The notes below the pieces were generated by a model that had not been told where the DNA came from, did not search any database, and saw only the letters and a list, made by a program, of their open reading frames with translations. A stretch of DNA of 64,000 bases from Macrostomum hystrix (taxonomy: Eukaryota > Animalia > Platyhelminthes), in assembly GCA_950097015.1 (NCBI GenBank), contig CATNEN010000029.1, forward strand, positions 4,774,001 to 4,838,000. The letters run 5' to 3'. The translations under genes were made by a program, and so were the position numbers. Below are positions 25,586-61,204 of this stretch, piece after piece; the stretch's first letter is position 1, and each line of letters starts with the position of its first letter.

Positions 25586-26164
25586 ATGCAGGCCATCAAG
25601 TGTGTTGTGGTTGGCGACGGAGCCGTCGGCAAGACCTGCCTGCTCATCTCATACACTACCAACGCCTTTCCCGGCGAGTACATTCCCACAGTGTTTGACA
25701 ACTACTCCGCTAATGTCATGGTGGACGGCAAGCCCATCAACCTGGGCCTGTGGGACACGGCTGGCCAGGAGGACTACGACCGGCTCAGGCCGCTGAGCTA
25801 CCCGCAGACAGATGTGTTCCTCGTCTGCTTCTCCCTCATCAGCCCGGCCAGCTATGAGAATGTGCGCGCCAAGTGGTACCCGGAGGTGAGTCATCACTGC
25901 CCGAACACGCCGATCATCCTGGTGGGCACCAAGCTGGATCTGCGCGATGACAAGGACACGATCGAGAAGCTGCGCGAGAAGAAGCTGGCCCCCATCACCC
26001 ACCTGCAAGGCATGACGATGGCCAAGGAGATCAACGCAGTCAAGTACCTGGAGTGCTCGGCTCTGACGCAGAAGGGCCTGAAGAATGTGTTCGATGAGTC
26101 CATCAGAGCCGTGCTGTGCCCCAGGCCGCGTCCATCGAAGCGCAACAAGTGCGACCTCCTTTAA
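25586..26164 (+). CDS. RAC1: Rac1 small GTPase, canonical, intronless
   Basis: [51 protein letters not shown]; 192 aa. Confidence 0.97.
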
Positions 26165-27137
26165 CAGTCTCTCGGAAGTGTCAGCTCCCCGACTTTCCTT
26201 AGCCTCTTTAACTGTTTCACTTTCTCCTAGCACACCCTGCAGCCTCAGAAGCAACTTCAGCCTTTGTGTCTGCGCATACATTGTGTGCGATATGTTCTGC
26301 TTATAATGTACATTCATAGATGGCTATGGAGCAATGAAGACTAGATTTCTCGCTACTCATTGCTCTCATTTCTCTTCTGTTTCTCTCGCTGCATCTGCTT
26401 ATTGACGTATTGTCTTCGTTTCGTTGGCTAATTTGTGAACAGTTCAAGTTTTTTCTGCTAATTAATCTCTGCTAAACAGTTTAATAGTGAAACTTTCTAT
26501 TGATTTTATATTATAAATAACACAGCCTAGTCTACTATAGTGCAACTACACGGCACTATTCTACAGTAATTTTGATTCCGTTAAAACAAGTGTTCAATAG
26601 TCACTTCAGTCGTGTCCTCTGTGGTGTATTTTTGTTTTATGTTTCTCTTTCGCTTCCCTCTGGTGTGGCAGTTGTCCTGTTTATTCTATTAGAAATGCTC
26701 TATCTATTCATTTGCATATTTACATTTTCTACTCTCAGCAGTTTCTAAGCAATTCAGTTACCCGGATACATTTTTGCCGTGTTTATTATTATCCTGTCCC
26801 AATCTACGAGCGAATGTGTAATTGTAACAATCAGAAACACAACTATTTCAATGCGATAATAAATATACAATTATAAAACTACTGTCTACAGCCGACAGTG
26901 TTAACTACTGCTTGAGGCTTTGAAATTATTAACTCTGATGCGTCATTGATCAAATAAAAAGTGAGAAAATGCTTCTTTGAATACATTTTTGCTCAGTTTA
27001 CATGAAAATTAGTGTCGGACCCATTAGAATGTACATACACAGTTCTAAATATCGAGTAGTGGCACATTGTACGAAATTTGTAGGTGAAAATATATGCTCT
27101 TGTGGGAAGTCTCGGCTGGGTTGTATCCCTGTTTATA

Positions 27138-27757
27138 CGAGGGTCAGTCAAAAAGTCCAGTCTAAGGAGTGGCTGCCACGTGGTTCAGCGGGTCCCAAGA
27201 AGTTCCGTGCCGAGCGGGCAGCAGCGAAGGTCTTGGCGACTGTGTTCTGGGATACTGACGGAGTTGTGATGGTTGACTTCCTAGAAAGCCAGAAAACCAT
27301 CAACGCCATCTACTACGAGTCGCTTTTGCGAAAGCTCCGCACCGAACTGGCCAAAAAGCGACCTGGCAAGCTGCACCGTGGAGTGCTCTTCCACCACGAC
27401 AATGCACCAGCCCACACTTCTCGACTGTGCCGGGAGGCTCTGCGAGATTTCCGCTGGGAAATACTTCAGCATCCTCCGTACAGCCCTGATTTGGCTCCTT
27501 CAGACTTTTTTTTGTTTCCAAAGCTGAAGGAGGCGATCAAGGGAGTTCGACATGACAGCAAGGAGGCTGCCAAGAAGGCTACCGTACAGTGGCTTGCTGC
27601 GCAGCCTCCTGCCTTCTACATGAATGGCCTGGAGAGATGGCGACACCGCATGCAGAAGTGTCTGACCCTGGAGGGGGATTATGTAGAAAAGTAGATTTGT
27701 GCGTGAAGCTTGAAGCTCGTGACAATAATATTATCATTACTTTTTGACTGACCCTCG
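27138..27757 (+). mobile_element. Internally deleted mariner element (620 bp)
   Basis: TA|CGAGGGTCAGTCAAAAAGT ... ACTTTTTGACTGACCCTCG|TA. The open C-terminal transposase has VFWD, HHDNAPAH and HPPYSPDLAPSDFFLFPKLK; the HTH region and first Asp are absent. Confidence 0.93.
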
Positions 27758-28510: not shown

Positions 28511-28619
28511 TTTAGAAAAAGCTCCGATATTTTTTCAAAATTTTCCTACGATAAAAAAGTTTTACATAATGAAATAGATAATTTTACAGTAGTCAGTCCA
28601 GTCTAAGCACTCGGAAAGT

Positions 28620-29231
28620 CTACAGCAAAGTGCAGCCATTTCGCTTATTCTTTCTCTCGCTCTTATTCTGGGCCGCGAGGTGCGCCCGCACCGCCTCTTC
28701 GAAGGTGTTTTCCACACCGCGCATTGCTCGAGCCGAGCACTCCACGAAAGCAATGGCGCCGATCTCCTTTGCCAATTCCTGGCCCTCCTGGGTAGACACC
28801 GGCGCGCTATTATTTCTCTTCAGCTCCTCTAAGGTCGCGTAGTCTGTCCGTAGGTCAGTTTTCAAGGCAGCAAGAACAAGGGTTGCCGTTTTACTGTAGC
28901 GTTTCAAATCCGGCACCCATTTGTTCCGCACATTTTCGTAGCTATCCCGGTGTTCAACAGAGTAACACACCAGGAACACGTTGGCGTCTGTGTAGCTGAG
29001 CGGTCGCAACATTTCGTAGCCCTCCTGTCCAGCTGTGTCGTGAATTGACAGCTCAATATCTGTGTTGTTAATTGATAGGTTTTGCGTAAATTCGTCGTGA
29101 ATTGTTGGAGTATACTGCTTTTCCTCATATTTGCCCGCCTTGTAGGCCGCTAGTAGACAGGTCTTGCCGACTGAGCCTTCACCGACCAAGACCAGCTTTA
29201 GTGGGATGCGAGTTGGTGCGGACATTGCCAT
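28620..29231 (-). CDS. Divergent Rho-family GTPase with CAAX, intronless
   Basis: GEGSVGKT, YTPTIHDEF, HDTAGQEGY, LKTD, ECSA, polybasic tail with CTLL. Confidence 0.92.
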   Translation of the reverse strand: MAMSAPTRIPLKLVLVGEGSVGKTCLLAAYKAGKYEEKQYTPTIHDEFTQNLSINNTDIELSIHDTAGQEGYEMLRPLSYTDANVFLVCYSVEHRDSYENVRNKWVPDLKRYSKTATLVLAALKTDLRTDYATLEELKRNNSAPVSTQEGQELAKEIGAIAFVECSARAMRGVENTFEEAVRAHLAAQNKSERKNKRNGCTLL

Positions 29232-30226: not shown

Positions 30227-30847
30227 TCAGAGCAACACACATCCGCCACTTCGCTTCTTCTTTTTCTTGGCGTACAGGCCCTTAGAAACCAGGTGAGCAC
30301 GTACGGCGTCCTCTATCACCTCCACCAGTCCGACTCCTTTCAGCGCCGAGCACTCGACGTACTTGCTGGCTCCAATTTCTGTCGCCATCGTTCGGCCATC
30401 TTCGCTGCTCAGCACCGATGCGTTCTGCCGCCTGAGATCATCGATTGTGGCCGGATCGGACCTTAAATCGATCTTGGTCGCGACCAGAACAAGTGGTACG
30501 TTTGCTGCGAAGTGCTTGAGTTCTGGGTGCCATTTGTCACGCACATTCCTGAAGCTGTTCACGGAGTCCACGGAGAAGCACAGCACAAACACATCGGTGC
30601 CGGGGTAACTGAGCGGCCGCAACCTGTCGTAGTCCTCTTGGCCCGCAGTGTCCCACAGCTGCAACCGAAATGGTCGATTCTCCACCGTTATGTCATGCGA
30701 AAAGTTGTCAACAATCGTCGGCACGTACTTCTCCGGGAAGCCTTTCTTCATCAGCACGGATAGCATGCAGGTCTTTCCGACTGATCCATCCCCAATCAGG
30801 ACGACTTTGAGTGTGTCTGCTCGATTACTATTGCTGCTGGTGGACAT
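30227..30847 (-). CDS. Rho/Rac-like GTPase with CAAX, intronless
   Basis: ATG at 30847; [43 protein letters not shown]. Confidence 0.93.
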   Translation of the reverse strand: MSTSSNSNRADTLKVVLIGDGSVGKTCMLSVLMKKGFPEKYVPTIVDNFSHDITVENRPFRLQLWDTAGQEDYDRLRPLSYPGTDVFVLCFSVDSVNSFRNVRDKWHPELKHFAANVPLVLVATKIDLRSDPATIDDLRRQNASVLSSEDGRTMATEIGASKYVECSALKGVGLVEVIEDAVRAHLVSKGLYAKKKKKRSGGCVLL

Positions 30848-32339: not shown

Positions 32340-32924
32340 TCAGAGAATGCTGCAGCGTGACTTTGGCTTGTGCGTGGCTGCCTTTGCTGGCATCATCACG
32401 GCTCGGATGGAGTCGTCGAATACATTCTTGAGACCTTTCTGCGTCAGTGCCGAGCACTCCAGGTACTTGACTGCGTTGATCTCCTTGGCCAGCGCCATGC
32501 CCTGCTGTTGTGAGACTGGCACCTGACCCTTGCTCTTCAGCTTCTCAATAGTTTCCTTGTCCTCCCGTAGATCTAGCTTGGTACCAACCAGAACAATAGG
32601 CGTGTTAGGACTGTGGTGGTTCACCTCAGGGTACCACTTAGCGCGCACGTTCTCGTAGCTGGCCGGATTCACCAGCGAGAAGCAGACGATGAACACGTCT
32701 GTCTGCGGGTAGCTCAGCGGTCTTAGCCGGTCGTAGTCGTCCTGACCAGCGGTGTCCCAAAGGCCCAGGTTAATCGGCTTGTTGTCAACCATAATGTTGG
32801 CTGAGAATGTGTCAAACACAGTCGGAATGTAATCGCTGGGAAAGGCGTTGGTCGTGTAGGAGATGAGCAGGCAGGTCTTGCCCACAGATCCGTCGCCGAC
32901 CACAACGCATTTGATGGACTGCAT
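32340..32924 (-). CDS. Rac-like GTPase (Rac1 paralog), intronless
   Basis: [47 protein letters not shown]; 194 aa. Confidence 0.96.
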
Positions 32925-33974: not shown

Positions 33975-34800
33975 TTATTGAAATGCGCACGCCGATTGGG
34001 TGCTGATTTTTTTGTTTATTTGATGGCACTTCTTCGAGAGTTGCGACACCATCTGAGGTACCAGGAAGTAGCTGCCCAGCCGCGTCTTAATCGGGGAATC
34101 TTTCAAGCGACGGTTTACCCTGGTCATGATATCGAAAATGTGCTCAGTCTTATACCTCTTCTAAATGGCGTCGCACAGGGCCTGCACATATGGCGAGCCT
34201 TCTTGCTCGTCTCGGATAGCCATGTAGCCCTCAGTGTTGGCGTAGCACATCAGCAGGTCGCTGTCCTGCGGACAGGGCAGGTCGAACGGCCCTGGTGCTG
34301 CTTCAAAGCCGTCGGTCGTTTTTTTTCCGCTCGGAGTCGCTGTGAGTTCCACGGCAAGCCTGTAGGGAAAAACGCGGCTAAAATTCTAAGTCCTGCTGCA
34401 GCCATTGTAGATTAAGCCTCGTGGAAAAAATTCACCTGAATAAAGAACAATTTCGGCCTGTGCCGCAGGTTTTGGCAGTGGTTTGATTTGAATTTCTCCG
34501 CAATGGACTGGACCTCTAGGCGGACTCCGTCACGGCCGAAAATGCAGCCCTGAGCGCCGTGGGCCATGACAAAGCACACGAAGCAGCCGTGCCTGGGTGA
34601 TACCTGAAAGAATGCGACGTCACTAAGCAGACTGACAATTTCGTTGCAACGGAGGTTCTGGTAAATAATTACTTGGAAGGCCAGGCTCTCGAGCAAAGAT
34701 TTCACTCTGCAGATCCTGCTGCGAGCCAGTTCTGTCCTCTAGCGTGCTCCCGTCATATTCCTCTGTGTTGATCACCAAACAGAGTCGCTGGGGTGAAGTC
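33975..34800 (-). pseudogene. Caspase pseudogene
   Basis: TSPQRLCLVIN, DRTGSQQDL, FVMAHG, KLFFIQ|ACRG (76-nt intron 34435-34360), CPQDSD. Frameshift near 34708 and in-frame TAG at 34163-34161 where the 45-kb paralog has E. Confidence 0.85.
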
Positions 34801-34915
34801 AGGGCAAATGTACACACCTGTGCGCGTGCGTGCCCAGGAGTCAGGGGAATGGGCAGAATTGGCGTGTGCCAGTGCTCACACTCCTGCAAATTAGCTTGTA
34901 TTATCGTATAATCAT
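34800..34915 (+). mobile_element. 3' fragment of SINE family B abutting the caspase pseudogene 5' end
   Basis: Matches 42872-43075 in reverse (GTACACACCTGTG, CAGGAGTCAG, ATGGGCAGAATTG, CCTGCAA followed by an AT-rich tail). Confidence 0.65.
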
Positions 34916-36198: not shown

Positions 36199-38348
36199 AT
36201 GCAAAGCGTCAAGTGTGTGATAGTTGGCAACAGCCTATCTGGCAAGACATGCATGCTCGAAGCCTACGTCAATGGTTCAATGCCGAGGAGTTTCATTCCA
36301 ACTGTGTATAAGACCTACTCGACTACAGTTTGCGTTGAAAGTGAGTCGATCGAGTTAACTCTAGGCGACACTGGTGGGGCTGATGGTTACGATAGTCTCA
36401 GGTCGGTTGCCTATCCTCTGACGGATGTTTTTATCGTCTCCATCGATCTCACAAAGCCTAGTACTCAAGTGCTGGCCAGCGTGCGAGACAGATGGTACCC
36501 GGAGGTGAGACACTACTGCCCCAATGTACCTACCATCCTGGTCGGGACTAAACTCGACCAGCGCTGTAATCAAGACGTCATCGATGGCATGAATGAGCAT
36601 GATGAGACTCCTGTGACAACTGAGCAGTGCAACCAACTGGCCCAAGAAATCAAAGCAGTGAAATACATGGAGTGTTCCGCTAAAACACTGGAAGGCCTCA
36701 AGGAAGTTTTTGAAGAGGCAGTTCATGCCGGACTCGCTGCCAACAGACGAAAGGGGAAGAAGAAGAGACAGAAATACAACGAGTATGAACATTGTTCATT
36801 TTGAAGTACTTGAAAAGCTGGTTGCAACTAATTAACTTATTTGCCTTTATTAAGTTAGCAGTTAAGTTAAATTGAGCTCATCACCTGATTCCATCATGCA
36901 GAGATTCAATGAAGACATTCTTTCAATCGCTGTCCTCGGGCAGAAGACACTCGGAGAGTTCGATTAGGTGAGCCTCTTCAGGTAGCATCGTAAGTTCAGT
37001 TACGAAAATCTGAAAATTCGCAACTGCATTCGAAAAAACTTGCAGAACCACAGAGGACGGCAGCGCCGCCACCCAAGATCCCCAGGCTACATCGCCTCTG
37101 GGAGAATCTAGTGTAAAGTACGCAACTGAGTTGTCTCATTGCATCCAGTCGATCTATGTATGCAGCCGTCAAATACTAACTACTCGAGTTATAAACTATA
37201 TATTTGCAGATCGCCAACCTCAATCAAAGCTTTCTTTCGAGGTCTACGACCCGGAAAAACCTACAAGGTTTTAAGGTAAGCGGGGCTTGGCCCTGAACCT
37301 ATGTTTTAGCAATATTTTATTAGTAAAAAGAGGTAATAATCTAAGCACATTTCAAATACAATTTGCATGAGTATTGACAATTCATGCCAAATTTCAGACA
37401 AGCGAAATCTTTTGAAAAGTCTTATTCAATTCTGGGCGAATCGGGTCAATCAGGAGACCTCTCAGAGATTCCTGAAGCAATGGCTCAAAATGCAGGGTGA
37501 GCAGAGAAATTGTGCCGATAAAAAAATTTCCCCTTTCAATTTTCAAATGCGTTTAAAAATGCGCTGCTCAAATTGGATCCTATATTGGCTCTTGTTTGCC
37601 AATTTTTAGGACGCTAGAAATGCCAGGAAAGTTTGAAGAGCAGCCAACAATGACCTCAGCAAAAAGTAAGGAGAATCGTAATTCGGAAACGACCAGCGGA
37701 GAGTCAGATATAGAACATGGTGAATCAAAAGATTCGGATTGCATTATCAGCGAACCGGACCCAATCGTCTCGTTTCGAATCCCTGCAGTGGCCAAAGGCA
37801 ATGCACTGACTTTGAGAGTTCTCCTTCTAGGAGACCCTGCAGTGGGCAAGACTTGTCTGGTATCGGCATTTACAGAGGGCCGATGCCAACAGGATTATAT
37901 TCCGACTGAGGCTGACGACTGCTTCGCCTTGGAAGGCGCATTCGCGGACAATCAGTTGCGCCTCAAGCTGTGGGATGTGAGCTGCACCGAGATGTTCGAT
38001 AATTACAGACCTCTGAGATACCGACAGATGGACGTTTTTCTCCTCTGCTTTTCCATTGCCTGTCCGACCAGCTTTGAGAATGTGCGCACGAAATGGTACT
38101 CTGAGGTGAGGCGCCACTGTCCTGACTCTCCAATAGTGCTAGTTGGCACCAAGGCGGACCTACGGGACGACCAAGAGACGCTCGACAAGCTCAAGGAGAG
38201 TGGCCTTGCTGCCATAGGCGAGTCACAGGGCAAGGGAGCAGCTAAGGCGATCGGAGCTGCGAAGTATTTGGAGTGCTCAGCACTGAGTCGAAAGGGCATC
38301 TCAGACGTGTTCAAAGAGGCGGTACTGAAGGCCCGCAAGCCGTCTTGA
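36199..38348 (+). CDS. Predicted tandem Rho-Rho atypical GTPase (~541 aa)
   Basis: Exons 36199-36782, 36902-36967, 37046-37117, 37210-37275, 37398-37496, 37610-38348. All introns GT-AG and phase 2; internal exons 66/72/66/99 nt are stop-free. Domain 1: GNSLSGKT/DTGGA. Domain 2: GDPAVGKT/DVSCT. No CAAX. Confidence 0.75.
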
Positions 38349-39670: not shown

Positions 39671-39675
39671 GATTG

Positions 39676-39750
39676 AATTCTAGATGCCCCAAATGAATGT
39701 GGCCTCGCCGCGGAATCAAACTTCGGGACCTTGGATCCGGGTTCTTCCAC
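39676..39750 (-). mobile_element. SINE family B head fragment
   Basis: CCCCAAATGAATGTGGCCTCGCCGCGGAATCAAACTT matches 43177-43215. Confidence 0.7.
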
Positions 39751-40348: not shown

Positions 40349-43300
40349 ATGGAGTCAAGAAACATCATGTGCGTCATCGTAGGCGATAGTGAAGTGGGCA
40401 AGACCTGTCTAATCTCTTCTTATCTAAAAAATGGATTTCAAAGCCAGCACATCAGTACTGATTTTTTTGTTGCCCACCGATTCACTACGATTGTTGAAGA
40501 GACTACCTTTAAGTTAACACTATGGGACTCGCCAGGCGAGGAAGACTACTACAGGCACGTGCCAGCGAGCTACCCGCAGACTGACGTGCTGCTAATGTGC
40601 TTCTCAATTGACTCTAGAAGCAGCTTCGAGCACGTGCGGGACAAGTGGAATAAAGAGCTGCGTCGAAACTGCCCCAAAGCGCCAAAGATTCTAGTTGGAA
40701 CCAAACTGGACCTTCGGAGCGGTGGAGCTGCTGCCGGAAGTTTGATAAGCAAGCTGGAAGGATTGGAATTGTGCAAGAAAATGCGTGCAGACAGGTACAT
40801 TGAATGCTCAGCTCTGACTGAAAAGAATGTGAAGGAAGTCTTTGACGAGGCCATCTTCGCAACCGTTGGTGGACCATCAAGAGCGCCGGAGAAAAAGAGG
40901 TAAAAAGCACTTTTTCTCTGAATGAATGTTACAACAAAATTTTTATTTTGCCCACGCTTTTTCCATGCAGCAATTCGCCGCTTTCAAAGTTAAAGTCTAA
41001 AAAGTGGAAGAAGAACAAAGGGACTGATTGTTCAAGGTAACTTTTTCTATTCAAGTATTTGCCCCTGGCAGCATAGCACAATAAAAATATGTTATCCAGC
41101 ATTTTCACTTGACCCATTTCCAAATTTTAGTAATTTGTTCAGCAGCAGGGAAAATGTTGCCGATAGAAGTTACGTTGATCAGGGAATTGAGCCGTAAGTC
41201 TGTTTGGCTTAATTCTGTCTGAATTCTTTGTGAAGACTGCTATTCATTCCACTTTAGATGGTTGATGCTTGTCCCAACAGAGTCAGAATCTTCCAGTTCT
41301 TTATTTCTACAATTTTTGTTCTGTACTAGATCAATTTAGTGCAGAAAAGCCTTCCTGCAGAAAGACAGTCGACTCAGCCCTATTATTATAGACGCGAAAG
41401 AGCATATTTTACCTTGGTCTTGTATTGTTCACCCGCTAGCCCTAAATCGCACTAAAGACCCCGACTTCACTCAACAGTAGAAAGACCATGCTATTTCCTC
41501 CCCTGGGGAAAGATCACGGTGGGATTTCAAATGTTGAAAGCGCTCATTACCTATAGTTCCTTTTGTAAAAAACAATATTCTTTTTTGTAAAGGACCTTCT
41601 TTAAAAATTGATTTAATTCTCACATAAGGGAATATGACTGTGCCAATGAGCAACCACTTCGAGAGTCCACCGCTTTCATAAATAGATACGGCTACACGAA
41701 GCCAGATGTGAATCTGGTGCATGAACAGTGAGTATTCATTTAAATCGCAAAATTTTTCGTCCTAAGCAATGTATATTTCTTTTTTGTGTCAATTTATTCG
41801 CATACAGTGCCGATGAGGACGAATATTATGCGTATGATGAAATTAAAACGGTTTGGACGGTTCAGGCTACGGACAGTGAGCCGTTCCTGTCGCCATCGCC
41901 ACCGCAGCCTTTGACCCTACCTGCAGCACCTCAAGGTCCTGCACATTCTACATTACCCAGGTGAGTTTCGAGTTTGTATTCTAAAAAACCACTGATAAAG
42001 AAAAAAATCCTAAAATCCGGAAAATTACAAGTTAGGTTTTCACAGGATAAGTAAAAAACAATTCTCCGATTTAATCATTGAATTATTTTACGATTGTACA
42101 TTTAAATTTATCTTTTCGGTTTTGGTTTTAGTCCATTGCAAGACGTGAAAACGAACAATGAAGGAGCAGCTCGGCAGTACGAAAATTTGTGCTGGCTAAC
42201 TTCATCTAACGAAGTTGAGAGACCACCTCTACCTCAAAGGTATAATTTTGAGTGGAATCACAATGAAATAAAACGAAATATTTCGCGAAATTAACTTAAT
42301 TTTCATCATGCCTAGGGAGTCACTATCCTTTGACAGATCTAAAACAATCTTAGCTTCATTCTAGGCTTGCTACGGTCACGTCAGTTCTTGCTGCTTCGGA
42401 GGTAAAATGCGACAGAGCTGCAGCGGCATCATCTTCTGCAATGGCCCCAGTGTTGAATTATCAGACAACAGAGAATCCAGCTGATTCTGGAACCTATCAG
42501 CAGGAAATCATTGAAGCTCTACCACAATATGCAAGCAGGTAAATTAATTTTACCTGACAAACATTCTATCTACAATCTACTACATAGTGCTCGTAGTTTG
42601 TACAATGAGTATGGAAAAATTTTCAACCCAGCTCACTTTTATTCACTTACATTATTAGCGCTGACGTTTTTGAAACAGGCTTAATCTTTCATTTGAAACA
42701 AAATGTTGTTTTTAATAGCTCCCAACAAGGGTTCAAAAGTTAGGGCCAATCCAGTGCATGTCCCGATACGGGGGTATACGTACTGCGTACTGCACAGACA
42801 AGGATGTGTCAGACCCGTTCTTGAAAGCAATGGCGAGGCCGCGATCGTCGTAGACTTTGCCTCTCAGCAGCTCCTTTAATAATAATAATTCCTCGTAATT
42901 GCAGGAAGGCTGCGGCAAATTGGCACATCATTTGGTGACACTAGACCCGCAGCCAGCGAGGAGGCAATTCTGCCCATTTCGCTGACTCCTGAGCACACAC
43001 GCACACAGATACTTTACGCAGGCACACGCTCACACAGGTGTGTACATCTGCCCTGACTTTCTCATCGTCAGGCAGTGTCAAGAGTACACTTCAGTACACT
43101 TCACTGTGCCTTGGAGGTTGGCCCTCAAGGGCGTAAATTGCACGACAAGCCCCCAAGCCTTCTCTCCACGGCTGCGCCCCAAATAAATGTGGCCTCGCCG
43201 TGGAATCGAACTTAGAGACCGTGGTGCGAGAGGCAAACGCGATAACCGCTCTGCCATGCAGGTGGAGAATCGTACATAGTAGCTGTTGCGGCTCTGGGGG

Positions 43301-45858
43301 CATGGTTCCACTGCGTCGCGTTTTGACACTCTTCAGAGACGATCTGTAAAACTCCGAATTAAACAGCGTGTTTGCCTGAAAATAGTTCAACACCATTTAT
43401 GTACGAGCTATCTGTAGACTAAATCCGAGTTTGGTCGGCAGCAAGTTATAGACAACAAGCGTACATTCAAATAAACTGCAAATACTTTTTCATAAAAAAA
43501 ATTTTAGCCTGTCAGAAATTGACCACGAAAAAACAAAAGAGCAGGCAAAGAGGCTCGAGGCTGAGCAAGCAAAGCTGAAGCTTCTTGCCCTCGGTGATGA
43601 GGCGGTGGGCAAGACTTGTCTCCTCACTATGTACGCTGAAGGAAAATGTCCGTCAGAGTATGTGCCCACTGAGACGGACGACTGCTTGACGAAGGAAGCT
43701 CAAATCGATACAAGTACAATTACAATTGGCCTGTGGGACCTCAGTGGGTCAAAAGATTTTGACCATATGCGACCGGAGAACTACAAACTAACTGACGTGA
43801 TCCTCATGTGCTTCTCGATCGTCAGTCCCTCCACCTTTGAAAGTGTTCGCAACCGATGGCAACCGGAAGTGTCTCGCTATTGCCCCAACACTCCTGTTGT
43901 CCTGGTGGGCACCAAGGCTGACCTGCGCCATGACCAAAGCACGCAGGAGAAGTTGCGCGCCAAAAAGCTCACTCCAATATCCCACTTACAAGGAACAAAG
44001 CTAGCCAAAGACATCGGCGCCAAAATTTACGTTGAATGCTCCGCCTTCAGTAGGCAGCGACTCCAGACCGTCTTTGATGTGGCTCTGCAATTCGCTCTGG
44101 AAAGTCAGGAAAGTTCAAGGGAGCGAGCTTCAAATCCTGCCAATAGGTAAGCATTTTATGTAAAGTAAACAATAAGTTTTGAGCTAACGCTGAATTCACA
44201 AAGGCCTGTGACAGTCATAATGATAAAATGAAATTACAAGAGTAGGAGAGCAGTGACAGTAATATTGCAAGCTTGTCTGCGGATTGATTCAAATGAATGA
44301 TCTAGTTTTTCAGAATGTCCTTCAATCTTTCTGAATAGTCTTATTTTATATAAACGAATCCTCATAATCATACAAAAAGTAGAGTTACATAAAAGTTCGT
44401 CGAGTTCTATTATGAGTTCTATTATGTACTTAACTAGCCAACCTGATGCCTCTATCAACGATGACTACTACAACGACATTGATGATGACTGCGACAGTGC
44501 CAAAAACGTTGAAGACGTCGAAGATTATGACTACAAGGCTGTTGACTTTGGTGATTCTTTTGTCGAACAAAGTCATTCTAATGCTGCAAGCACAACTACG
44601 GGTACTTTAGAACGAAAGCCGGTGGTTCCTCCGCACCCGGTTCCAAAACCGCGCAGATTCTTCAGCCGAGAGACTACGGAAGACCAGCGAGGGATGAGCG
44701 ACGATTTGTCTTTGAGCATAGCACCACAGTCTGGTACAGCGCTTTTCGACGAGTTAGCAGACAACCGAGACTCGTAAGTTTGTAATCTGAAGGAAATTAA
44801 AACTGGCACTATTTGATTGTGATCCCTACATTTTTTATTGCGTATGGCTTTCCATTTCGATGCATTTACTAAGGCTTAACAAACCTTAACTAACTTCAGA
44901 CATGGTCGTGAGCAAGAAATAGCAGAATCGAATCTGACAAAAGCCTGGTCCTCCATGAAGCAGTTGTCAACAATCTTTCTGAATCGGTATGTTAATGCAT
45001 TTTTCTTTTATTTATGCAATTCGGCAGCACAACTCAATACTATTTCATTCTTCGCTGATCTAACTTAATAAATTCTATTTTTCACCCAGCTCGTGCTTCG
45101 CTAAAGAAATTTACCGAGTGACTTCACCTCAGGGATTCTGCCTAATCATTAATATAAAAAACTACATAGACTCTGTGAAGTTTGAGGAGCGACTGGGCTC
45201 GGAAATCGATGTGAAACGCGTGAAGGACACATTTAGCAAACTCAATTTCATAGTTCGAGTTCATGAAGATGTCAGCTGCAATTCATTGGCTACAGTCTTG
45301 AGTCTTGCTTCCATCTCTCCTGAGCTGTCAGATCACGGCTGTTTCGTCTGCTTCATCATGGCTCACGGTGCGAACTCGTTGATCTACGGAAGCGACGGCG
45401 TAGCCCTGGAGATTCAATCGATTACTGAACGGTTCCGAGGAAACCAGTGCGAAGGATTGCGCAACAAGCCGAAGCTCTTCTTCATTCAGGCGTGCCGCGG
45501 AATGGAAAACATTGACGAAGAAAGAGGTGTAACAATCGATCAGCAAGTCGCCGAAGAACTGGGTGCGCACTGCCCCAAGGACAGCGACTTTCTGCTGAGC
45601 TTTGCGACCCCGAGCGGTCAGGTTTCCCTGCGCAGAGAGAGCGAGGGATCGCCGTTCGTGCAAACTGTGTGCGATGTGATTGAGGAGCGATACAAGAGTG
45701 AGCACGTCATCGACATGCTGACCACTGCCAACGGACGCCTCAAAATGAACCCAATCTATAAAGGAGGCCTACAGATGTACGTGGTGTCTGAGACCCAGAC
45801 GAGACTATCTAAAAAGTGCTACTTGGATCCGGGCTTGGCATCGATGTTTCAAGAATGA
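40349..45858 (+). CDS. Predicted Rho-Rho-caspase fusion protein (~938 aa)
   Basis: Exons 40349-40899, 41808-41960, 42132-42239, 42365-42538, 43508-44146, 44438-44773, 44900-44986, 45090-45858. All introns GT-AG and phase 2; total 2817 nt open. Rho1: GDSEVGKT/DSPGE. Rho2: GDEAVGKT/DLSGS. Caspase: MAHG, QACRG, SLR. Confidence 0.85.
42872..43262 (-). mobile_element. tRNA-derived SINE family B, near full length (~390 bp)
   Basis: Box A TGGCAGAGCGG, box B AGTTCGATTCC, body, then (TAT)n tail at ~42875. Confidence 0.8.
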
Positions 45859-48040: not shown

Positions 48041-49899
48041 TTAAGCCGGTCCCTCTGGAGATAACAGCTGCAACAGCTGCCGAAGAGCATCTTCAAGGCC
48101 ATCCCGCTCCACAGCAGAGCATTCAAAGTATGCCACTGCACCGATTTCTGCAGCCATCTGGCTTCCCTGCTGCTCATAGATGGGATCTAGGTCCTGCGCC
48201 TTCAGCTTATCGATTGATGACTGGTCGTATCTCAGATCCACCTGGGTACCGACAAGCACGATTGGCGCGGCAGGACAATAGCAGCTCAGCTCAGGGTGCC
48301 ATCTCAGCTTAACATTCTCTAAGCTAGCCGGGTTGATTACGCTAAAGCAGACAAAAAACACATCCGCTTGGTAATACCTCTGCAGCCGTAAGTTATCCAA
48401 TGGATCGGAGTATCTTATATCCAAAAATTTTACACACTGGAAGCCGTCACTGCAAGTTACGACTATAGAATAGAAATATTCTCTCTCGCTCGCGTTGTAG
48501 TTGTACAAGCGTTGCTCTTTCGAGAATGCATTAATCAGAGAAGTTTTTCCCACAGCCTCGTCTCCAATCAGGACGATATTCACGGATGCGATCTCGTTTT
48601 GAGAACTTGGTTTCCTGACTGACAAATCATCCGCATGGCAAGATTTAGAACATTTGTTCTTTTCTCCTTTGTCAGCTCTAGGATTGGCACTGGAAAATTC
48701 GTCAAAGCAATGATCATCTGTTGCTGAAAAACTTGAGAGCTGCTCCTCAAACTTGATTTCCACAGATTCTTGAGGTCTGGAAATCGCGAAATATATAATA
48801 TATTTACAGAAGGATGCTGTGCTTTCTTTGAAACGGCCGTTTACACGCTAAAATCGCTCCAATTACCTTGCCTTTGAATCATCTGTGTCCTTGTTCACAG
48901 CAGTTTGCAGGGCTACATCGAGGACAATCTCCAGACCTGCATTGGTCAAGGCTGAGCACTCGATGTACATTTTAGCTCCAATTTTGCTGGCCAAATTCAT
49001 TCCCAATGAGCAGCTTATTGAGGTCGCGTCTAATTCTCGAAGGTCGTTTTTGGTTCCGACCAGAAGGACCGGCGTGTCCGGGCAGTGTTGAGTGACCTCC
49101 GGGTGCCATCGGGTGAGCACGCTTTCAAACGAGGCAGAACTGACGACTGAGAAGCAGATGAGAATCACGTCTGCCTGACTGTAGTTGTTCGGCCGCGTCC
49201 AGTCAAAGCGCTTTGATCCGCTCAGGTCGCAGAGGCCCACATAAATTTGTTGACCGTCCACGCGAACTTCCATTCTGAAGCAGTCGTCAGCCTCGGTTGG
49301 CGCGTAGCTAAGCGAACAGCTGCCTTCTGCGAGCGCACTGAGCAGACAAGTCTTGCCTACTTCTTCGTCACCAATGGCTACTATTTTAAGACTTGTTTGT
49401 CTCGGCTGTGTCAGGCGTTGGTAAAACCTCCTTGTCTCTTCACTACCCGCACAGCTCTGTGCACCCGTTTCCTGCCTAATAAAAAGAGTGAATTTTGGAA
49501 TGTCAAAGAAACAATTTCTCGGCTGACTAGGGAAGCTAGTCAATTAAGAAATCGAAATAATCTCAAAAGATGCAGGTTAGCTGCTATGTGATTGAATCAG
49601 AAAATGCACGCATAGAAAAATAGGCATGGTGCATGCTCGACAAATAAAGTAAGCAAGTTTGATGAAAAGCCTTACGTCACATTATGTAAATTTCAATATT
49701 TTATTAGTGTGAGTTGCAAATATATAGTTATCACGAAACAGTAAAGACAAAATGACACTTCTTACATTGGTTGCGCTTGCAGTGAGGAGCTTCTTGCAAT
49801 CAATGATGCATATTCAAAGTCATCATCATATTCATCTTCAGCGTCGAATTCCAAGCTTGCTTCTTGCTCCTCAGTCCTGTGGAAGGATTTCATTCTCAT
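48041..49899 (-). CDS. Predicted tandem Rho-Rho atypical GTPase (~492 aa from ATG 49899)
   Basis: Exons 49899(or 49912)-49766, 49475-48867, 48776-48041, with phase-2 GT-AG introns. Domain 1: GDEEVGKT/DLSGS. Domain 2: GDEAVGKT with G3 replaced by DIRY. No CAAX. Confidence 0.8.
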
Positions 49900-50060
49900 G
49901 ATGGAAACCTTTCTGGAATTTTTAAACTACATTTTAAACTTTTTACCGAGAACTGAACTCACAAGAATGGGGAACCAGAATGGGGAATGGGGAATGAAGA
50001 TCCGAATACTCACTCAATGCAGTAACTAAAAATATACTTGTTTTTAAGAACTCGTTAATA

Positions 50061-53640: not shown

Positions 53641-56600
53641 TCATTGAGGCATTGGGTCCGGCTTTGTGGAGGCTAGATTTGGATTCAGGAAGCACTTCTT
53701 CGAGAGTCTCGTCAATGTCTCCGGCACAACGTACAGCTTGTTCTCTCCATCGTCGATCGGGTTCTCCTTGAGGCGCCTCTTCACAGTGGTCAGCATGTCG
53801 ATGATGTGCTCAGTCTGATGCTGCTCCTCAATCACTTCGCACACGGTTTGCACGAATGGCGATCCACCATTTGCGGTGCGCAGTGAAACGTGGCCATCTG
53901 GACTTGGAAAGCTCAGCAAAAAGTCGCTGTCATTAGGACAGTGCATGTTCAGTACGCTTGATGCTTGATCAGCATAGACAATCTGCCTGCCTGTTCTCTC
54001 ACAAGGAATGCGGCCACGACAAGCTTGGATAAAGAACAGTTTGGGCGTGTGGTGTAATCTGTAGCAAAGTCCTCCCTCAAACGGTGCAGTGATCGACTTA
54101 ATGTCAAGCGGTTTTCCGTCGCTTAGTATGATTGACGAGCTTGTGCCGTGAGCCATGAGGAAACAGACAAAACAACCGTGATTTGACAGTTCAGGTAAGA
54201 TCGCCGTCTGGCTTAGAAGGTCGACTAATTGATTGTAAGTCAGATCCTCGTGTACTTTAACCAAGAAGTTCAGTCTCCTAAACAGCTCCTTCACACGCTT
54301 GACATCAAATTCCGAGCCTTTTCGCTCCTCGAAAAGCTCGTTCTTGTACTTATTGATGTTAATGATCAAGCAGAAGCCCTGTGGCGAAGTCACTTGGTAA
54401 TAATCCACAGGTGGTCGTCTAAAATTCAAGAGCAAATTGCACGATGCGACAATCAAAGCTGGATGAATGCAAAAAGACGTATGAATGCAAAAGAAAAGTA
54501 GCTTTTGAAAAAAACTTAATCAATAGAAACTTAAAAGCGGGTGATTTTCACACGAAATGAAATGATTGAGCTACTTGCTATAGGATCTGCTGTTTCTAGG
54601 ATTTGAATCCGAATTCCTCATAAAATTAAGAATGATAAATCATCTAGCTATTGTTGCTGGGGGCGCCTCCACCATGGAAAACGGAAGCTCTTACGTTGAA
54701 ATGTTCATGCGCGGCTTTGGTATCGGATTCAGCAATCGATTTCGTGGACAGCGTGGCAAAGGAGTCACAGAATTTTCAGTAATTGCTTCTGTTATTGGTA
54801 GCTCAGCTGGACATTCCACTGATTTTAGCAGGTCATCATTTAAGTGCGGCTTTTCTGTTCTGGACGCAGATCCTTCAGGGATGACATCGTTGCCCGAACT
54901 CGCATCGTTTTCATCGTGTCTTCAAATTACAATATTGCAAAAAGCAATTAACTAATAATAAATTTTTAAGTTCTTTATCGTAAAATACATTGATATGGCA
55001 CTCATGATCATCGGAATTAATCAATATTTATATAATCGAAGTTTAAATGCTAAGTTTATCATATGCAACTAGGCTGTTTCAAAGTGCCTTCTGTGGTTTA
55101 GGCCTAGGGCACGTTCGTGTTTGGACTCGCACTAGCTGCCAATTTAACTAACCTTAGGACTAAGAAAATGGCCTCAGTTTTAGGAAACATGCGCAATTAT
55201 TCAAATAGCTCATAAGCTCAATGCACTCTGATCACGAAAACGCGATGTCTATTGCACCAAGCAGAGAGGCCAGACTTGCACTGAATTTTATTAATCAGTC
55301 AAAGTTTGTTTAAGCCAGACTCATGCTCGTGCGTAGCAACCGCACAAGCTTCAACATAAGCGAAAACTCGGTGTGTCACCCCTAAAATTAGGCACCGCTG
55401 CGACGGCTAACTGCCCTGCATTAATAATCGCCAGTCGGAAGATAAAATCGAAGATATCGTTTTTAACTGGGACATTTTTGCAAAGAAAAAGCCATATCAC
55501 ATTTTCGTTAAAGGTACAAGAAATCTAAGTGCAATTAAAAGAAAAGACAAAAATCGCTTACTTAAGTCGATCAGCGCCCTCGGCAATGCCTGCAGCTCCG
55601 GCAACAGCTTGTGATCTGCAATTTCAAGTTAAAGCGAGAAGCTATATAGTAATCGCATACACATTCACTCAGCCATTAGAAAGTAGAAGTGGTACGCTAA
55701 AAAATGTGCGCTAACACGCTGCGCTAGTCGACCTGATGGCGAGGTTCGACCTGGTGTCGGCAACACGCGCTTCCGCAAACCGCCAATTCGGCTGGTGACC
55801 TTTGCTGAGTGCAAGCGTAGGAGGCGGAAAGCGCGCGGCCGTTTCGCCACTACCCGCTTGGCGCAGCTAGACCACATGCTAATAATGCCTTACCGCGAAT
55901 GCAGCCGGCTAATCAACTGCGACACAGTGGAACCGCAGTTCATTTGATCTGATCAACGCCTGCTCTACTGTGACCTGCGGCTCTCCGACCCGCTCTACAG
56001 GCCGCCGATGCACCCCCCAACGTACGCTGTCTCGGTGGCCTTGTGGTCTGCACAGGCGGCGGACTACAATTCAATAGGAAAGGCTATAACAACTACCGCA
56101 GCCAAGACTCTGCCACTGATGGAGCCCGCGTCACGGCAGCTACCAGTTTGGGCGAACAACCCTGAGGTCTATGAGGCTCGGCGCACAGTTAAAGGACTAC
56201 GACGCTCCAGGCGCCCGACTTCCGACGCCAAGAAGGCACTGGCGGACATCTAGGAAAAGCGGCAGCAAGCTGCTGTGGACGACGCCATCCGGGTCGCAAA
56301 ACCGAGTCGTCTAGCCGGCCGTGAATGCCCTTACTGGTCGTAAGAAGAAGGCGGCGCTAAACCTGGCTGGTGACTCTGCGGTGGAGCGCAGAAATATGCT
56401 GCGCAGTTTCTTCGTCACCATCGTCAATGCGCCGTCGCCGTCACTGCCTGCTGACCTATCGCTGCCCCCTGAGGTATCACTGTCGAAGCAGGAGGATTTC
56501 GACATCCGTCCTTTCACCAGCACTGACGTTGTGGAGTTCGCTCGCAGAATTCCGGGAGGTCGCGCCCCCGGCCCTGACGAAGTGCCCATCGAGGCGTTGC

Positions 56601-59600
56601 GAGTCCCGAGGGTCGTCACTTGTAATAACTTGAGACTGAAGGCTGGCCAGGAATTGATTCACAAACGTAGCGAGCCAGTTGGAAGTTGCGGCTCCTTATA
56701 ATATCACTTCGTTCAATTTGACTGGCCCTAGGACTTAGGGCACGGCCGGACCAGCCACCTCAATTAGCACGAAAGCCAAGCGTGACACAAGTAAACTGCA
56801 GTCAGCTTGCACTAAGAACTGATAGACGCAAAGAAATGAAGCAAAGCAATAAACATAAAGTGCAGAGTGAACGCATTTAAGAGTCCATTGAATAACATCA
56901 CATCTCCCCTCTGAGTCAGTTTTCCCCATCACAGCTGCAGTCTCTCAGATGGGCCACGAGCTCTCAGAGGGTACCGCCGGGAAGTCGCGGCATCCTGACG
57001 CGCGTTGTTCTCTGGTCCGTCGGCGAGTTCGGGTGCCGCCTCCCTGACGGTGGCGCCGCTGGCGGTAGTAGCAGGATCCTGCTCTGACGCGCGCCGCGAG
57101 CTCTCGGGGTCGTGTCACCGCCGCCATCAGTCAGCGGCCGGCCGGCATCAGCGAGGTCGAGGGCGAAGCCGTCAGCGCGGGCCGCCACCAGCTGATCCGC
57201 ATGCCGCATGTGCTGACCGCGCTGCGAGTCGACGATGCAGTTGCGGCTGCCAGCGCCCGTGATGACGCCCTCCGCCCAGCGCGGCGTGTCGCCGGCCCTA
57301 GCGCCGGCGCTGATTTCGCGGAAAAGCACACGATCGCCGGTTTGGAACTCACGCGAACTCCCTGATGAGGTCACCGATGTTCTCGTCATCGAGATGGACC
57401 TGCGCCATGATGCTGGGCCAGTCCAGCCGCAGCTTAGCTAACCAGTCCCGTCCGAGCAGCGCCGATTCGCCCCTGCGTGACGACAAGCAGCGGGAGCTAC
57501 AGCTGCAGCCTGTTGTGCTTGACGGTGACCTCCGCCTGAACAGTACGAACAGAATGGGTTCCGGCCCACCGTAGCACTGTGACGCAAATCCTGGGCCTCC
57601 GCCGCATCATCGAAGAAGCGCGCATCCACCAGTTAATCCTGGTTGCTCTTTTCGTGGACTTTCGCCGGGCTTTCGACTCGGTGGTACGTGACGCGCTGCC
57701 CCTGGTGCAATGGGCCTACAATGTGCCGTAGGAGCTCATTACCGCCATCATGGCGCTGTACGTGGGCACCATCGCTTCGGTAGTGACGTCAGACGGCCTG
57801 TCGGACTGTTCAGCACGACCTCGGGAGTGCTGCAGGGGGACACGCTGGCGCCTTTGTACTCTGGGTGCTCTGTACCGGCCTGCCATCTGCAGACCACGGC
57901 TTCCTGCTGTGTCGGCGCGCGAGCCGGTGACACCCCGAGAAGAGGCCCTGCGCTCTCGGCTACGCAGACGACATCGCGCTGATGTCTTCGACAGTCGAAG
58001 GCGCCCAACGGCTGCTGGATGACCTGAAAAAGGCGGCGGCGGGAGTCCGTCTCATCGTGAACGTGCAGAAGACCGAGGGGCTGACGGTGCCGCGAAATCT
58101 TCCGGACGAGATTCTGCTCCGGGACGATAGCGGCCACGGGACCCCGGGACTTCCGGGGTGCCGCCAGTTCGTTTATCTCGACGGACTAGGGCCGGACGTG
58201 AGCGACGATTTGGCGAGACAGCGACAGCCTGGGCTGCCTTTCGATCAGTGCGCACGGTGCTGCTTTCGGCTGCGCTGACGGACAGCGCCAGGTCGCAGCT
58301 TTTCCAGGCGGTCGTTAAGACCGTGACGCGCTGCCCCTGGTGCAATATAATGCTCTATAATGCGCAGACCTGGACTCCGACGGAGGCGCTCAAGGGGCAG
58401 CTCAACACGACACATGCGGCCCTGCTTCGCGCTACGTTTGGCGCCCGCCGCGGCCCAGGAAGCGAGACGACCGACTCACTGTACAAGCGAGCGCGACTGA
58501 CGCGGCCTTCTGACTTGCTGAGACAGCGGCGCATGCGCCTTGCTGGGCACGTGATCAGGGCTGAAGCCTACTGCCCTGAGCCGCTGCTGGATGTGCTTCT
58601 GTGGACTCCGCAGGGACCGCGCAGGCGCGGACAGGGACGATCGGCCCAATACATCGACCTGCTCTTCTCAGACGCGCGCGCCCCGAGCCAGGCTGACGGA
58701 GTGAAGCATGTCAGCGATGTAAACTATGCATTAAGCGCGCGTTTTGACGCTGGCCCCCTTTTTTGGGCCACTGCGGCGGGTTGCGCTCTATTATTATTAT
58801 TTAGCAAATAAAAATCCATCGCACATTTTTCGTAAAAAGGTACAAGAAATCAAGGCGCAATTAAAGGCAAAGACAAAAAATAGTTTACTGAATTCGATCA
58901 TCGCCAATGCCTGCAGCTCCGGCAACAGCTTTTGATCTGCAATTGCAAGTTAAAGCGGGAAGCTATAGTAATCGCCTATCGCAATACATATTCACTCTGC
59001 CATTCGAAAGTAGAAGAGCAAAAATATTTCTCACGATTCAGGGAAATCGTTGGCAGATTTCTTTTTCGAAAAAATCTTAAACAAAGAGGCTAAATCATGG
59101 TGTGTTCTGAAAATGACGAAATGAAAGACTAAGGTAGTGCAATTTAATACCAATAATGAAAATTGAAGATATCGTTTCTAACTAGCATTGCGTGTTAAAC
59201 TATATGTGCTAGCATGCATTTTGCTCTTAGCAAGTTAAATGTCAATTATAACACTTACAATTTCTGTTTAAGGCTACGTTCCTTTAAATTTGACTGAACC
59301 AATTTTTTAGTTGCACGAACCGCCTCATCGAAAACCTCCGTTACACCCTCTCTTGTTCGGGCAGAGCTTTCGAGATATTTAACTGCCTTGATCTTCTTGG
59401 CCATTTCTAAGCCTTGCTTGCATGTGATCGGAACCTGGTTCCGCTGCTTAAGGTTGTCGATCGTTTCCTGGTCATCGCGAAGGTCCAGGTGGGTGCCGAT
59501 CAGCAAGATGGGCGTGTTCGGACAATGGTACTTCACTTCCGGGTACCAGCTGGTGCGCACTCTCTCATAAGTTGTAGGGCGGATTAGGCAGAAGCAGATG

Positions 59601-59836
59601 ATGAACACATCCGTCCCCGGATAGATCTGCGGCCTGAACCAATCGTAGTCGTCCTGACCAGCCGTGACAAAAACGCTCAAGTTGATCTGCTTGTTGTCAA
59701 CCATGATTTTTGCAGAGTAGTCGTTAAGTACCGTTGGAATGTACTTGGTCCAGAAAGTCTTTGTTGTGTATGATTCGAGTAGGGCGGTCTTGCCAGCACA
59801 ACCATCTCCGACAACGACGCACTTGATGTCGTCCAT
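53641..59836 (-). CDS. Predicted Rho(Rac-like)-caspase fusion protein (~526 aa)
   Basis: Exons 59836-59259 (donor TT|GTAAGT), 54919-54695 (225 nt, open, donor AC|GTAAGA), 54418-53641; all phase 2. Rho: [22 protein letters not shown]. Caspase: MAHG, QACRG, SLR. Confidence 0.75.
55690..58803 (+). mobile_element. 5'-truncated, decayed RTE-like non-LTR retrotransposon in intron 1 of the Rho-caspase gene
   Basis: APE tail NTRFRK..QLDHML..SDQ; [13 protein letters not shown]; RT motifs [33 protein letters not shown]; RLAGHVIR; (TAT)n tail at ~58790. Multiple stops and frameshifts. Confidence 0.88.
56621..57572 (-). mobile_element. Nested Ty3/Gypsy fragment: protease end, integrase tail, PPT and 3' LTR
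   Basis: Minus strand: [15 protein letters not shown]; [27 protein letters not shown]; PPT AGAGGGGAGA followed by a TG...CA-bounded ~280-bp LTR (56902-56621). Confidence 0.78.
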
Positions 59837-61070: not shown

Positions 61071-61204
61071 GGGCCTGGCACTGCTTTAGGTGTCCTCTTA
61101 TGCCTAAGGTCTCACCGCGCTGAGGGGCTGAAAGGTCCGGGGAGTCTATCCGGCCATTAGCGGTTTTTATTTTTATTCTCTTCTTTCTCTTTTTCCAGCG
61201 ACCT

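Follow-up and report, generated by a model that had tools for sequence, protein, structure and literature searches.

A cluster of canonical Rho genes, atypical Rho domains and Rho-caspase fusion genes in the flatworm Macrostomum hystrix

The Rho and caspase genes of the cluster

The cluster of Rho-family genes described here lies in a stretch of 64,000 nucleotides from the flatworm Macrostomum hystrix (assembly GCA_950097015.1, contig CATNEN010000029.1, positions 4,774,001 to 4,838,000 of the forward strand), referred to below as the window. It encodes ordinary Rac and Rho proteins together with atypical Rho domains, which are joined to caspases or to one another (Table 1). Ras family domains were detected by Pfam in 11 open reading frames (ORFs) between 25.5 and 59.9 kb, at E-values of 5e-24 to 4e-52, and Peptidase_C14 domains were detected in two more (E 5e-46 and 3e-42). 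With such values, chance matches are of no concern for the Rho and caspase domain calls. A search of the window by tblastn with the domain-containing ORFs revealed a third caspase at 34 kb on the minus strand, spread over different frames, and no further Rho copy beyond the 11. The total of 11 Rho and three caspase domains, which an earlier note on this DNA had reported, is thus in agreement with both methods; the caspase copy at 34 kb, however, is broken and has no link to any Rho domain.

Table 1. Genes, exons and insertion of the Rho/caspase cluster (window coordinates). The fourth column lists the ORFs in which Pfam detected the Ras or Peptidase_C14 domain.
Feature	Position	Strand	Domain ORF	Evidence and remarks
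Canonical Rac, 192 aa, CDLL end, single exon	25586..26164	+	25586+	Pfam Ras E 4.8e-52
Canonical-type divergent Rho, 203 aa, CTLL end	28620..29231	-	28620-	Pfam Ras E 1.4e-46; G12, Q61 present
Canonical-type divergent Rho, ~206 aa from first ATG, polybasic tail, CVLL end	30227..30847	-	30227-	Pfam Ras E 8.9e-46
Rac paralogue, 194 aa, CSIL end	32340..32924	-	32340-	Pfam Ras E 3.6e-52
Broken caspase copy	34023..34826	-		tblastn high-scoring segment pairs in three frames; two frame changes, one in-frame stop
Gene model G1: RhoA, perhaps spliced to RhoB	36199-38348	+		only a weak donor in window
RhoA, atypical Rho, possibly first exon of Rho-Rho gene	36199..36804	+	36166+	Pfam Ras E 5.9e-33
RhoB, atypical Rho, terminal exon or separate gene	37557..38348	+	37596+	Pfam Ras E 1.3e-36; own ATG at 37620
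Gene model G2: RhoC, two linker exons, RhoD, linker, caspase	40349-45858	+		best supported model
RhoC, first exon of Rho-Rho-caspase gene	40349..40903	+	40349+	Pfam Ras E 1.3e-38; stop in phase-2 GTAAA donor
Small linker exon, DQGIEP end	40994..41194	+		same residues and phase-2 GTAAG donor in M. lignano L005
Acidic proline-rich linker exon	41725..41961	+		phase-2 GTGAG donor at ORF end; resembles acidic exon of PAA49772.1
RhoD exon, Rac-derived atypical domain (by sequence)	43452..44150	+	43605+ (extends to 43473)	Pfam Ras E 9e-32; stop in AG/GTAAGC donor
Linker exon with conserved proline-rich PVVPPHPxPKPR	44301..44774	+		phase-2 GTAAGT donor at ORF end
Caspase exon (p20 and p10), last of G2	45064..45858	+	45118-45858+	Peptidase_C14 E 4.9e-46; acceptor at 45090
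Gene model G3: acidic exon, RhoD', RhoX	49926-48041	-		90-nt intron
Acidic first exon of G3	49765..49926	-		ATG, acidic stretch like plus strand linker, phase-2 GTAAGA donor
RhoD', RhoD paralogue, Rho insert deleted	48863..49543	-	48863-	Pfam Ras E 2.7e-32; stop in AG/GTAATT donor; the 90-nt intron before RhoX is in frame
RhoX, most degenerate domain, terminal exon	48041..48847	-	48041-	Pfam Ras E 4.6e-24; acceptor TTTCCAG at 48777
Gene model G4: Rho 59255, linker, caspase	59836-53641	-		4.4-kb intron with LTR-like insertion
Rho 59255, Rac-like, probable first exon of Rho-caspase gene	59255..59836	-	59255-	Pfam Ras E 9e-42; phase-2 GTAAGT donor at stop
Long terminal repeat (LTR)-like insertion, GC-rich (~0.6)	55476..59016	.		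direct repeats 55476-55689 and 58800-59016, 82% identical, ~200 bp
Linker exon before second caspase, IPKPR motif	54694..54921	-		phase-2 GTAAGA donor; in-frame acceptor in caspase ORF
Second intact caspase exon (p20 and p10), terminal	53641..54519	-	53641-54456-	Peptidase_C14 E 3.1e-42

The exon structure of the gene models was indicated by the position of the stop codons. In all nine ORFs that were predicted to be non-terminal exons (RhoC, two linkers, RhoD, the proline-rich linker, the minus strand acidic exon, RhoD', the second linker and Rho 59255), the stop codon lies within a phase-2 donor (GTAAG, GTGAG, GTAAT or GTAAA), and each donor is followed by an in-frame acceptor with a pyrimidine tract. 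This feature is missing from all nine ORFs that should end a gene (RhoA, RhoB, RhoX, the four canonical genes and the two intact caspases); among window ORFs of at least 60 codons, its background is 28 of 326. The junctions were examined at the splice codons only, and the database searches used single exons or whole database proteins.

The models were compared with the genome of Macrostomum lignano (assembly Mlig_3_7, GCA_002269645.1). A 1015-aa protein of this species, PAA49772.1, has the composition Rho-Rho-caspase and is encoded by one uninterrupted ORF over eight exons, while PAA63380.1 (757 aa) is a shorter model from the other homeologue. Directly upstream lies a 560-aa Rho-Rho gene, which in the other homeologue is annotated as a single-Rho gene of 244 aa. 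The order and orientation of RhoA, RhoB, RhoC, RhoD and the caspase are the same in the window and in M. lignano, where a caspase remnant is located upstream of RhoA as well, and the domains of the window pair one-to-one with those of M. lignano by best-match identity. RhoC is orthologous to residues 1-184 of PAA49772.1, and the linker exon at 44301 matches residues 569-642 (tblastn, E 1.7e-4). Exon ends and intron phases are likewise the same in the two species (DQGIEP followed by GTAAG; the RhoD stop codon within the donor). Since the GenBank gene models of Mlig_3_7 derive from an RNA-seq transcriptome that was assembled with the genome as a guide (PMC5730564), the M. lignano fusions are transcript-supported. 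Polycistronic precursors make up ∼7% of the assembled M. lignano transcripts (PMC5730564), but they do not account for a continuous ORF of 1015 codons over eight exons.

Taken together, the splice signals of the window, the shared intron positions and the transcript-based models of M. lignano establish that the Rho-caspase and Rho-Rho fusion genes are real. The arrangement described in the earlier note, in which atypical Rho domains are joined directly to caspases and caspase-less Rho-Rho genes are adjacent, is conserved in two Macrostomum genomes. Its proposed Rho-Rho gene at 36-38 kb has a counterpart in the 560-aa model of M. lignano, but in the window, with its weak donor, the join of RhoA to RhoB appears uncertain. 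That Rho 59255 is joined to the caspase at 53.6 kb is probable, as judged from the donor site and not from an orthologue. A single giant gene running from RhoA through RhoB, RhoC and RhoD to the caspase, as in an older prediction (P0170), was rejected, since the RhoB ORF stops without a donor.

Motifs, ancestry and evolution of the fused domains

The division of the Rho domains into two classes, as drawn in the earlier note, is borne out by the translations and the motif alignment. The four single-domain genes at 25.5-33 kb are canonical in having G12, Q61 and a CAAX box (CDLL, CTLL, CVLL and CSIL), each box finishing in Leu, and they also retain T35, DTAGQ and an NKxD-type motif. The other seven domains lack a CAAX box and carry damaged catalytic or nucleotide-binding motifs. 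Position 12 is occupied by S, P or E and position 61 by A, T, E or S in six of them (36166, 37596, 40349, 43473, 48863 and 48041), so that all six domains of G1 to G3 combine a non-Gly residue at 12 with a non-Gln residue at 61, in both species. The individual combinations are Ser and Ala in RhoA, whose polybasic tail has no CAAX box; Pro and Thr in RhoB, with a change of G60 to Cys that is common to both species; Ser and Glu in RhoC; and Glu and Ser in both RhoD (with PTETDDC as switch I) and RhoD', which are 51% identical. RhoX has Glu at position 12 and further changes of T35 to Ser, G60 to Tyr and K116 to Gln. Rho 59255, which likewise lacks a CAAX box, retains G12 and Q61 and carries D57V and K116H. 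G60 is thus lost in RhoB and RhoX, and K116 in RhoX and Rho 59255. As claimed earlier, the T35 equivalent is present in six of the seven atypical domains, the exception being RhoX; Y32 and T35 are mostly present. In proteins of the Ras superfamily, substitutions of this kind abolish hydrolysis, while the P-loop, T35, D57/G60, NKxD and SAK can still hold GTP. By these motifs, the fused domains are Rho-derived and not working Rho switches.

With regard to ancestry, the best match of RhoD among solved structures is Rac1 (E 4e-60, residues 4-185), covering the whole G domain including the Rho insert, and the ranking continues with Rac2, Rac3 and then Cdc42. Nine of the 11 domains have the complete insert of 23 residues; RhoC and RhoD' have shortened ones of 16 and 13 residues, respectively. 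Rho 59255 is 57% identical to Rac. No orthology to Rnd, RhoH or RhoBTB was evident, the best structures being Rac1/2/3 and Cdc42 and the best database matches canonical Rac or Cdc42 at no more than 52% identity. The fused Rho domains are Rac derivatives, as judged from their sequences.

The caspases appear to be otherwise normal members of their family. Both intact copies align over p20 and p10 with solved caspase structures. The caspase at 45064 matches caspase-7/-3 (E 2e-36) and is 66% identical to PAA63380.1/PAA49772.1. For the second (53641), caspase-8 ranks first among solved structures (E 1.5e-30), and the catalytic residues of the two line up. The His-Gly and QACRG motifs and the Arg/Gln/Arg of the Asp pocket are present in both copies and in the M. 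lignano orthologue, as is an Asp-Gln pair in the intersubunit linker. The intact caspases thus have the features of Asp-specific enzymes, with a predicted self-cleavage site. No CARD or DED was found in PAA63380.1 or PAA49772.1, in which the only domains are Ras/Roc and Peptidase_C14. The broken copy at 34 kb retains the His-Gly and Cys motifs and carries one GT-AG intron that the other caspases lack. One of its frame changes falls in a homopolymer run and might stem from an assembly error, an explanation that does not apply to the second frame change or to the in-frame stop.

The fused domains have diverged rapidly. Between the two species, Rac is 100% identical at the protein level with a synonymous divergence (dS) of 0.71, while the fused domains are 45-57% identical (RhoA 56% to its orthologue in locus L005, RhoB 57%, RhoD 56%) and the caspase 66%, with nonsynonymous divergence (dN) of 0.26-0.48 and saturated dS. 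The apparent pairwise omega values of ∼0.08-0.3, and of 0.15-0.30 for paralogue pairs, are NG86 values from a comparison of two species and are rough, since dS is saturated. When the dS of Rac is taken as a neutral floor, the upper bounds of omega for every domain fall at 0.37-0.67. All of the ORFs apart from the 34-kb caspase have stayed intact despite the saturated synonymous divergence. These values indicate that the fused genes are fast-evolving, yet under net purifying selection. Copy number has also changed, with extra copies and one broken copy in M. hystrix.

Conservation is unevenly distributed along the domains. Switch I and switch II are the best conserved parts between orthologues (12 of 13 and 12 of 19 positions in RhoD; 10 of 13 and 14 of 19 in RhoA), and the insert is the least conserved. 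In comparison with Rac, only 4-6 of the 13 switch I positions are alike, and in RhoX only 2 of 13. A PTE[AT]DDC motif with a one-residue insertion is common to RhoB, RhoD and RhoD'. A switch surface that is conserved but not Rac-like is more readily explained by a dedicated partner than by imitation of Rac.

Proteins that combine Rho and caspase domains were sought in databases by searches that pick candidates by shared words, with length windows. When the caspase exon was compared exhaustively by HMMER with 1.84 billion representative proteins, 6339 matches were obtained, and among the best 150 of these the combination occurred only in the M. lignano cluster. Similarly, a search of 5.8 billion proteins with PAA49772.1 in its whole length gave Rho together with caspase in M. 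lignano only, the other matches being Rho domains fused to unrelated things. The RhoD exon alone matched only canonical Rac/Cdc42, at no more than 52% identity, with no closer relative outside Macrostomum, and the caspase exon alone gave no match in the range of 135-430 aa at E <= 1e-40. The combination of Rho and caspase is therefore likely to be absent outside Macrostomum. The next-nearest caspases are also from M. lignano and carry N-terminal ankyrin repeats, a kinase plus ankyrin repeats, or an LRAT-type domain (P0002, P0015, P0018, P0020, P0022, P0024 and P0025). Together, the caspases of M. lignano look like a lineage-specific family with exchanged N-termini. A search of the literature on Rho-caspase fusions or Macrostomum caspases returned nothing relevant.

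Canonical genes and surroundings of the cluster

The protein encoded by the Rac gene at 25586 is 100% identical to that on three M. lignano contigs, at a nucleotide identity of only 88-89%, and its ORF ends in a terminal stop without a donor site. The Rac paralogue at 32340 is 78% identical to it (omega 0.20). The gene at 30227 has a 63-79% identical copy in the M. lignano locus L008, and minus strand Rho genes lie at the position in M. lignano that matches the gene at 28620. The flanking order of P4-ATPase, ribosomal protein L10, Rac and minus strand Rho genes is the same in M. lignano. The Rho array of M. lignano (loci L006-L008, at ∼15.7-17.1 kb) contains a second, truncated copy of Rac that covers residues 1-142 and matches Rac at 97-99% identity, and the array is therefore in flux in this species too. 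A partial mariner-type transposase (Transposase_1, E 6e-20; a 230-aa ORF at 27002-27694, plus strand) is located between Rac and the next Rho gene of the window.

Upstream of the cluster, phospholipid-flippase (P4-ATPase) exons extend over 5908-21800 on the plus strand, syntenic with M. lignano. Ribosomal protein L10 (24253-24915) is encoded by an uninterrupted ORF in the window, whereas its M. lignano counterpart has an intron of ∼1 kb. Antisense between the P4-ATPase exons, ∼14 kb from the Rho cluster, lies a 578-aa ORF (9966-11702, minus strand), whose first 75 residues match CIDE-N (Pfam E 2e-10; CIDE-A structure E 1.7e-7), a domain of DNA-fragmentation-factor/CIDE cell-death proteins; the remainder has no Pfam match.

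Several tandem repeats were also observed. A 6.2-kb array (14912-21109; 28-bp unit, 221 copies, 94% match) has strong GC and AT skew and yields spurious minus strand ORFs of up to 1679 codons, and a shorter array with a 28-bp unit of another consensus occupies 8161-8585. Within the cluster, an array of 30 copies of a 30-bp unit (38779-39679) lies exactly between G1 and G2, and one of 117 copies of a 20-bp unit with strong GC skew (50060-52402) lies just as exactly between the second caspase and G3, on the minus strand. The insertion at 55.5-59.0 kb is located in the presumed 4.4-kb intron of G4, which separates Rho 59255 from the linker and caspase exons; its ORFs gave no Pfam match, and the label LTR-like refers to its direct terminal repeats. 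The GC-rich end of the window (60435-64000) contains a 97-bp tandem repeat (60435-61067) and a 495-aa ORF (61205-62692, plus strand) that has no Pfam match.

Possible roles of the Rho-caspase proteins

Activation of caspases normally depends on death-fold prodomains. The explanation that we favor, with confidence that is about evenly balanced, is that the dead Rac modules constitute a swapped-in regulatory prodomain of the caspases, in a cell-death cluster specific to Macrostomum. According to this explanation, the G domains of a tandem Rac/Rho array would have lost positions 12 and 61 together with the lipid anchor, two of them also losing parts of the nucleotide-binding motifs, and would now form the long regulatory N-terminus of caspases that are otherwise normal and Asp-specific, with the same task as the CARD and DED prodomains in initiator caspases. 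The locked or pseudo-GTPase modules would bind a dedicated partner via their conserved, non-Rac-like switch surfaces or, alternatively, would pair with the neighboring caspase-less Rho-Rho proteins. Such binding would draw the caspase domains together, which would then dimerize and cut themselves at the conserved intersubunit Asp-Gln site, and the Rho-Rho proteins may serve as adaptors or competitive dampers. What we infer in this scheme is the nucleotide state, the binding of a partner, activation through proximity and the trigger. Prodomain swapping is general in this lineage: the nearest paralogues carry ankyrin, kinase plus ankyrin or LRAT N-termini, and Rho is thus one of several swapped prodomains.

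The proposed prodomain can be compared with known systems. Like the initiator caspases (caspase-8/-10 with DED, caspase-9/-2 with CARD), the fusion proteins have a long non-catalytic N-terminus before a complete p20/p10, with the catalytic His/Cys, QACxG and the S1 Arg present, and the second window caspase is closest to caspase-8. The nearby caspase-less paralogues of the prodomain are comparable in idea to the DED-only and CARD-only regulators. The prodomain differs in consisting of one or two Rho-family G domains with no death fold, and activation by proximity is inferred for it. The substitutions at positions 12 and 61 (and 59) are shared with Rnd, RhoH and RhoBTB, in which they abolish hydrolysis and the protein stays GTP-bound, and RhoBTB also has its Rho domain at the N-terminus of a larger multidomain protein. 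The fused domains, however, are not orthologues of these proteins: their nearest solved relative is Rac1, they have neither a BTB domain nor a CAAX box, and in two of them, where G60 or K116 is also gone, nucleotide binding may be absent altogether. In the caspase expansions of invertebrates (amphioxus, bivalves; PMC3196919, PMC7836458), catalytic domains are likewise recombined with unusual N-termini. A Rho-family G-domain partner, in contrast, is absent from the architectures found outside Macrostomum in the literature or protein searches.

Several observations weigh against the prodomain explanation. The nucleotide states on which it draws are expectations from the motifs: RhoA, RhoC, RhoD and RhoD' are expected to be locked with GTP, whereas poor nucleotide binding or none is expected for RhoB, RhoX and Rho 59255. 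In the window, the sole splice signal between RhoA and RhoB is a weak donor located six codons ahead of the RhoA stop. No counterparts of G3 or G4 were found in the M. lignano stretches examined, and one of these two minus strand genes has an intron interrupted by the LTR-like insertion; both genes may be of recent origin or in decay. The estimates of selection are rough and derive from two species, and neither of the M. lignano gene identifiers Mlig021837 and Mlig000293 was found in the texts and supplements examined from M. lignano expression papers.

A second explanation, to which we assign a rather low probability, is that these are non-immune caspases coupled to the cytoskeleton, whose Rho modules would direct local and possibly non-lethal activity to structures of actin or membrane, for example when sperm differentiate or when tissue is renewed or regenerates. 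The parent domain, Rac, and the location of the genes within a Rac/Rho array are consistent with this proposal, as is the conserved PxxP-type proline-rich motif in the linker ahead of the caspase. Lineage-specific, fast-evolving tandem families are, moreover, typical of reproductive genes too. On the other hand, the domains have no CAAX box and therefore no direct membrane anchor, and their switch surfaces differ from that of Rac, so that the classical Rac effectors are unlikely partners. It was fair of the earlier note to treat a developmental or cytoskeletal role as being as possible as that of a decoy.

The decoy role itself, which that note had put forward, is possible, but we consider it unlikely. 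Here, the dead Rho domains would act as integrated baits on which bacterial proteins that bind or modify Rho GTPases would act, the modification releasing or clustering the caspase, and the Rho-Rho proteins would be partners or dampers. To our knowledge, pyrin neither contains nor binds Rho, and in the animal decoys known to us the sensor recruits the caspase via adaptors; in the present proteins the caspase shares one covalent chain with the Rho-like domain, whose surface does not mimic Rac. What they share with the known guards and decoys (pyrin-RhoA, NLRP3-Rac2, NLRP1/CARD8, plant NLR-ID) is a functional tie between a Rho-family protein and caspase activation, Rho GTPases being guarded in mammals by pyrin and NLRP3 (PMC11781737), and the fusion of a cell-death module to a domain which descends from a common effector target and is no longer active itself. 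Descent from a frequent target of bacterial effectors, here Rac, with loss of the enzymatic cycle is typical of integrated decoys; it is necessary for such a role, but not sufficient. The rapid evolution (45-66% identity as opposed to 100% for Rac), the birth-and-death turnover with extra copies and a broken copy in M. hystrix, and the presence of Y32 and T35 in most of the domains point in the same direction, and the varied N-termini of the sister caspases recall the domain shuffling of invertebrate immune families (PMC3196919). T35, however, is expected in any G domain that binds GTP and Mg and is thus not diagnostic. All seven fused domains have lost the CAAX cysteine, and all but Rho 59255 have lost Q61. 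The baits could therefore report neither C-terminal cleavage nor, with the exception of Rho 59255, deamidation of Q61. Selection is, on average, purifying. In addition, switch I, which bears the known target residues, is Rac-like at only 4-6 of 13 positions, yet is near-invariant between orthologues (12 of 13 in RhoD); the presumed guardee is therefore not mimicked, and the effector-recognition surface that a bait should keep from its target is not seen. In its fullest form, in which the proteins would be the first animal sensors with a pathogen-target decoy (dead Rac) fused to an executioner protease, with the Rho-Rho proteins tuning the threshold, the proposal is less probable still.

Finally, it is highly improbable that the fusions are functionless by-products (decaying duplicates, read-through transcripts, or artefacts of annotation or assembly), as could be suspected from the broken caspase copy, the LTR-like insertion in one intron, the polycistronic precursors (∼7%) among the M. 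lignano transcripts (PMC5730564), the merging of four Rho domains in one model in P0170 and the minus strand genes with no known orthologue, since the M. lignano ORF runs uninterrupted for 1015 codons over eight exons, exon boundaries and phases are alike in the second species, the remaining ORFs are intact despite saturated synonymous divergence with omega well below 1, and the catalytic and motif states are conserved in both species.

The cluster displays several stages together, namely canonical Rac/Rho genes, GTPase-dead single and tandem copies, caspase fusions and a decayed copy, and offers a clear natural example of a signaling domain recruited into cell-death machinery. A small-GTPase fold serving as the prodomain of a caspase would represent a new mode of caspase control and would tie Rho-type signaling surfaces directly to proteolysis. 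If the decoy proposal were true, effector-triggered immunity by integrated baits would extend to a flatworm, in which a single polypeptide would both detect and answer a Rho-acting bacterial protein. M. lignano is a laboratory model with transgenesis, and the orthologous genes are therefore accessible in this species.

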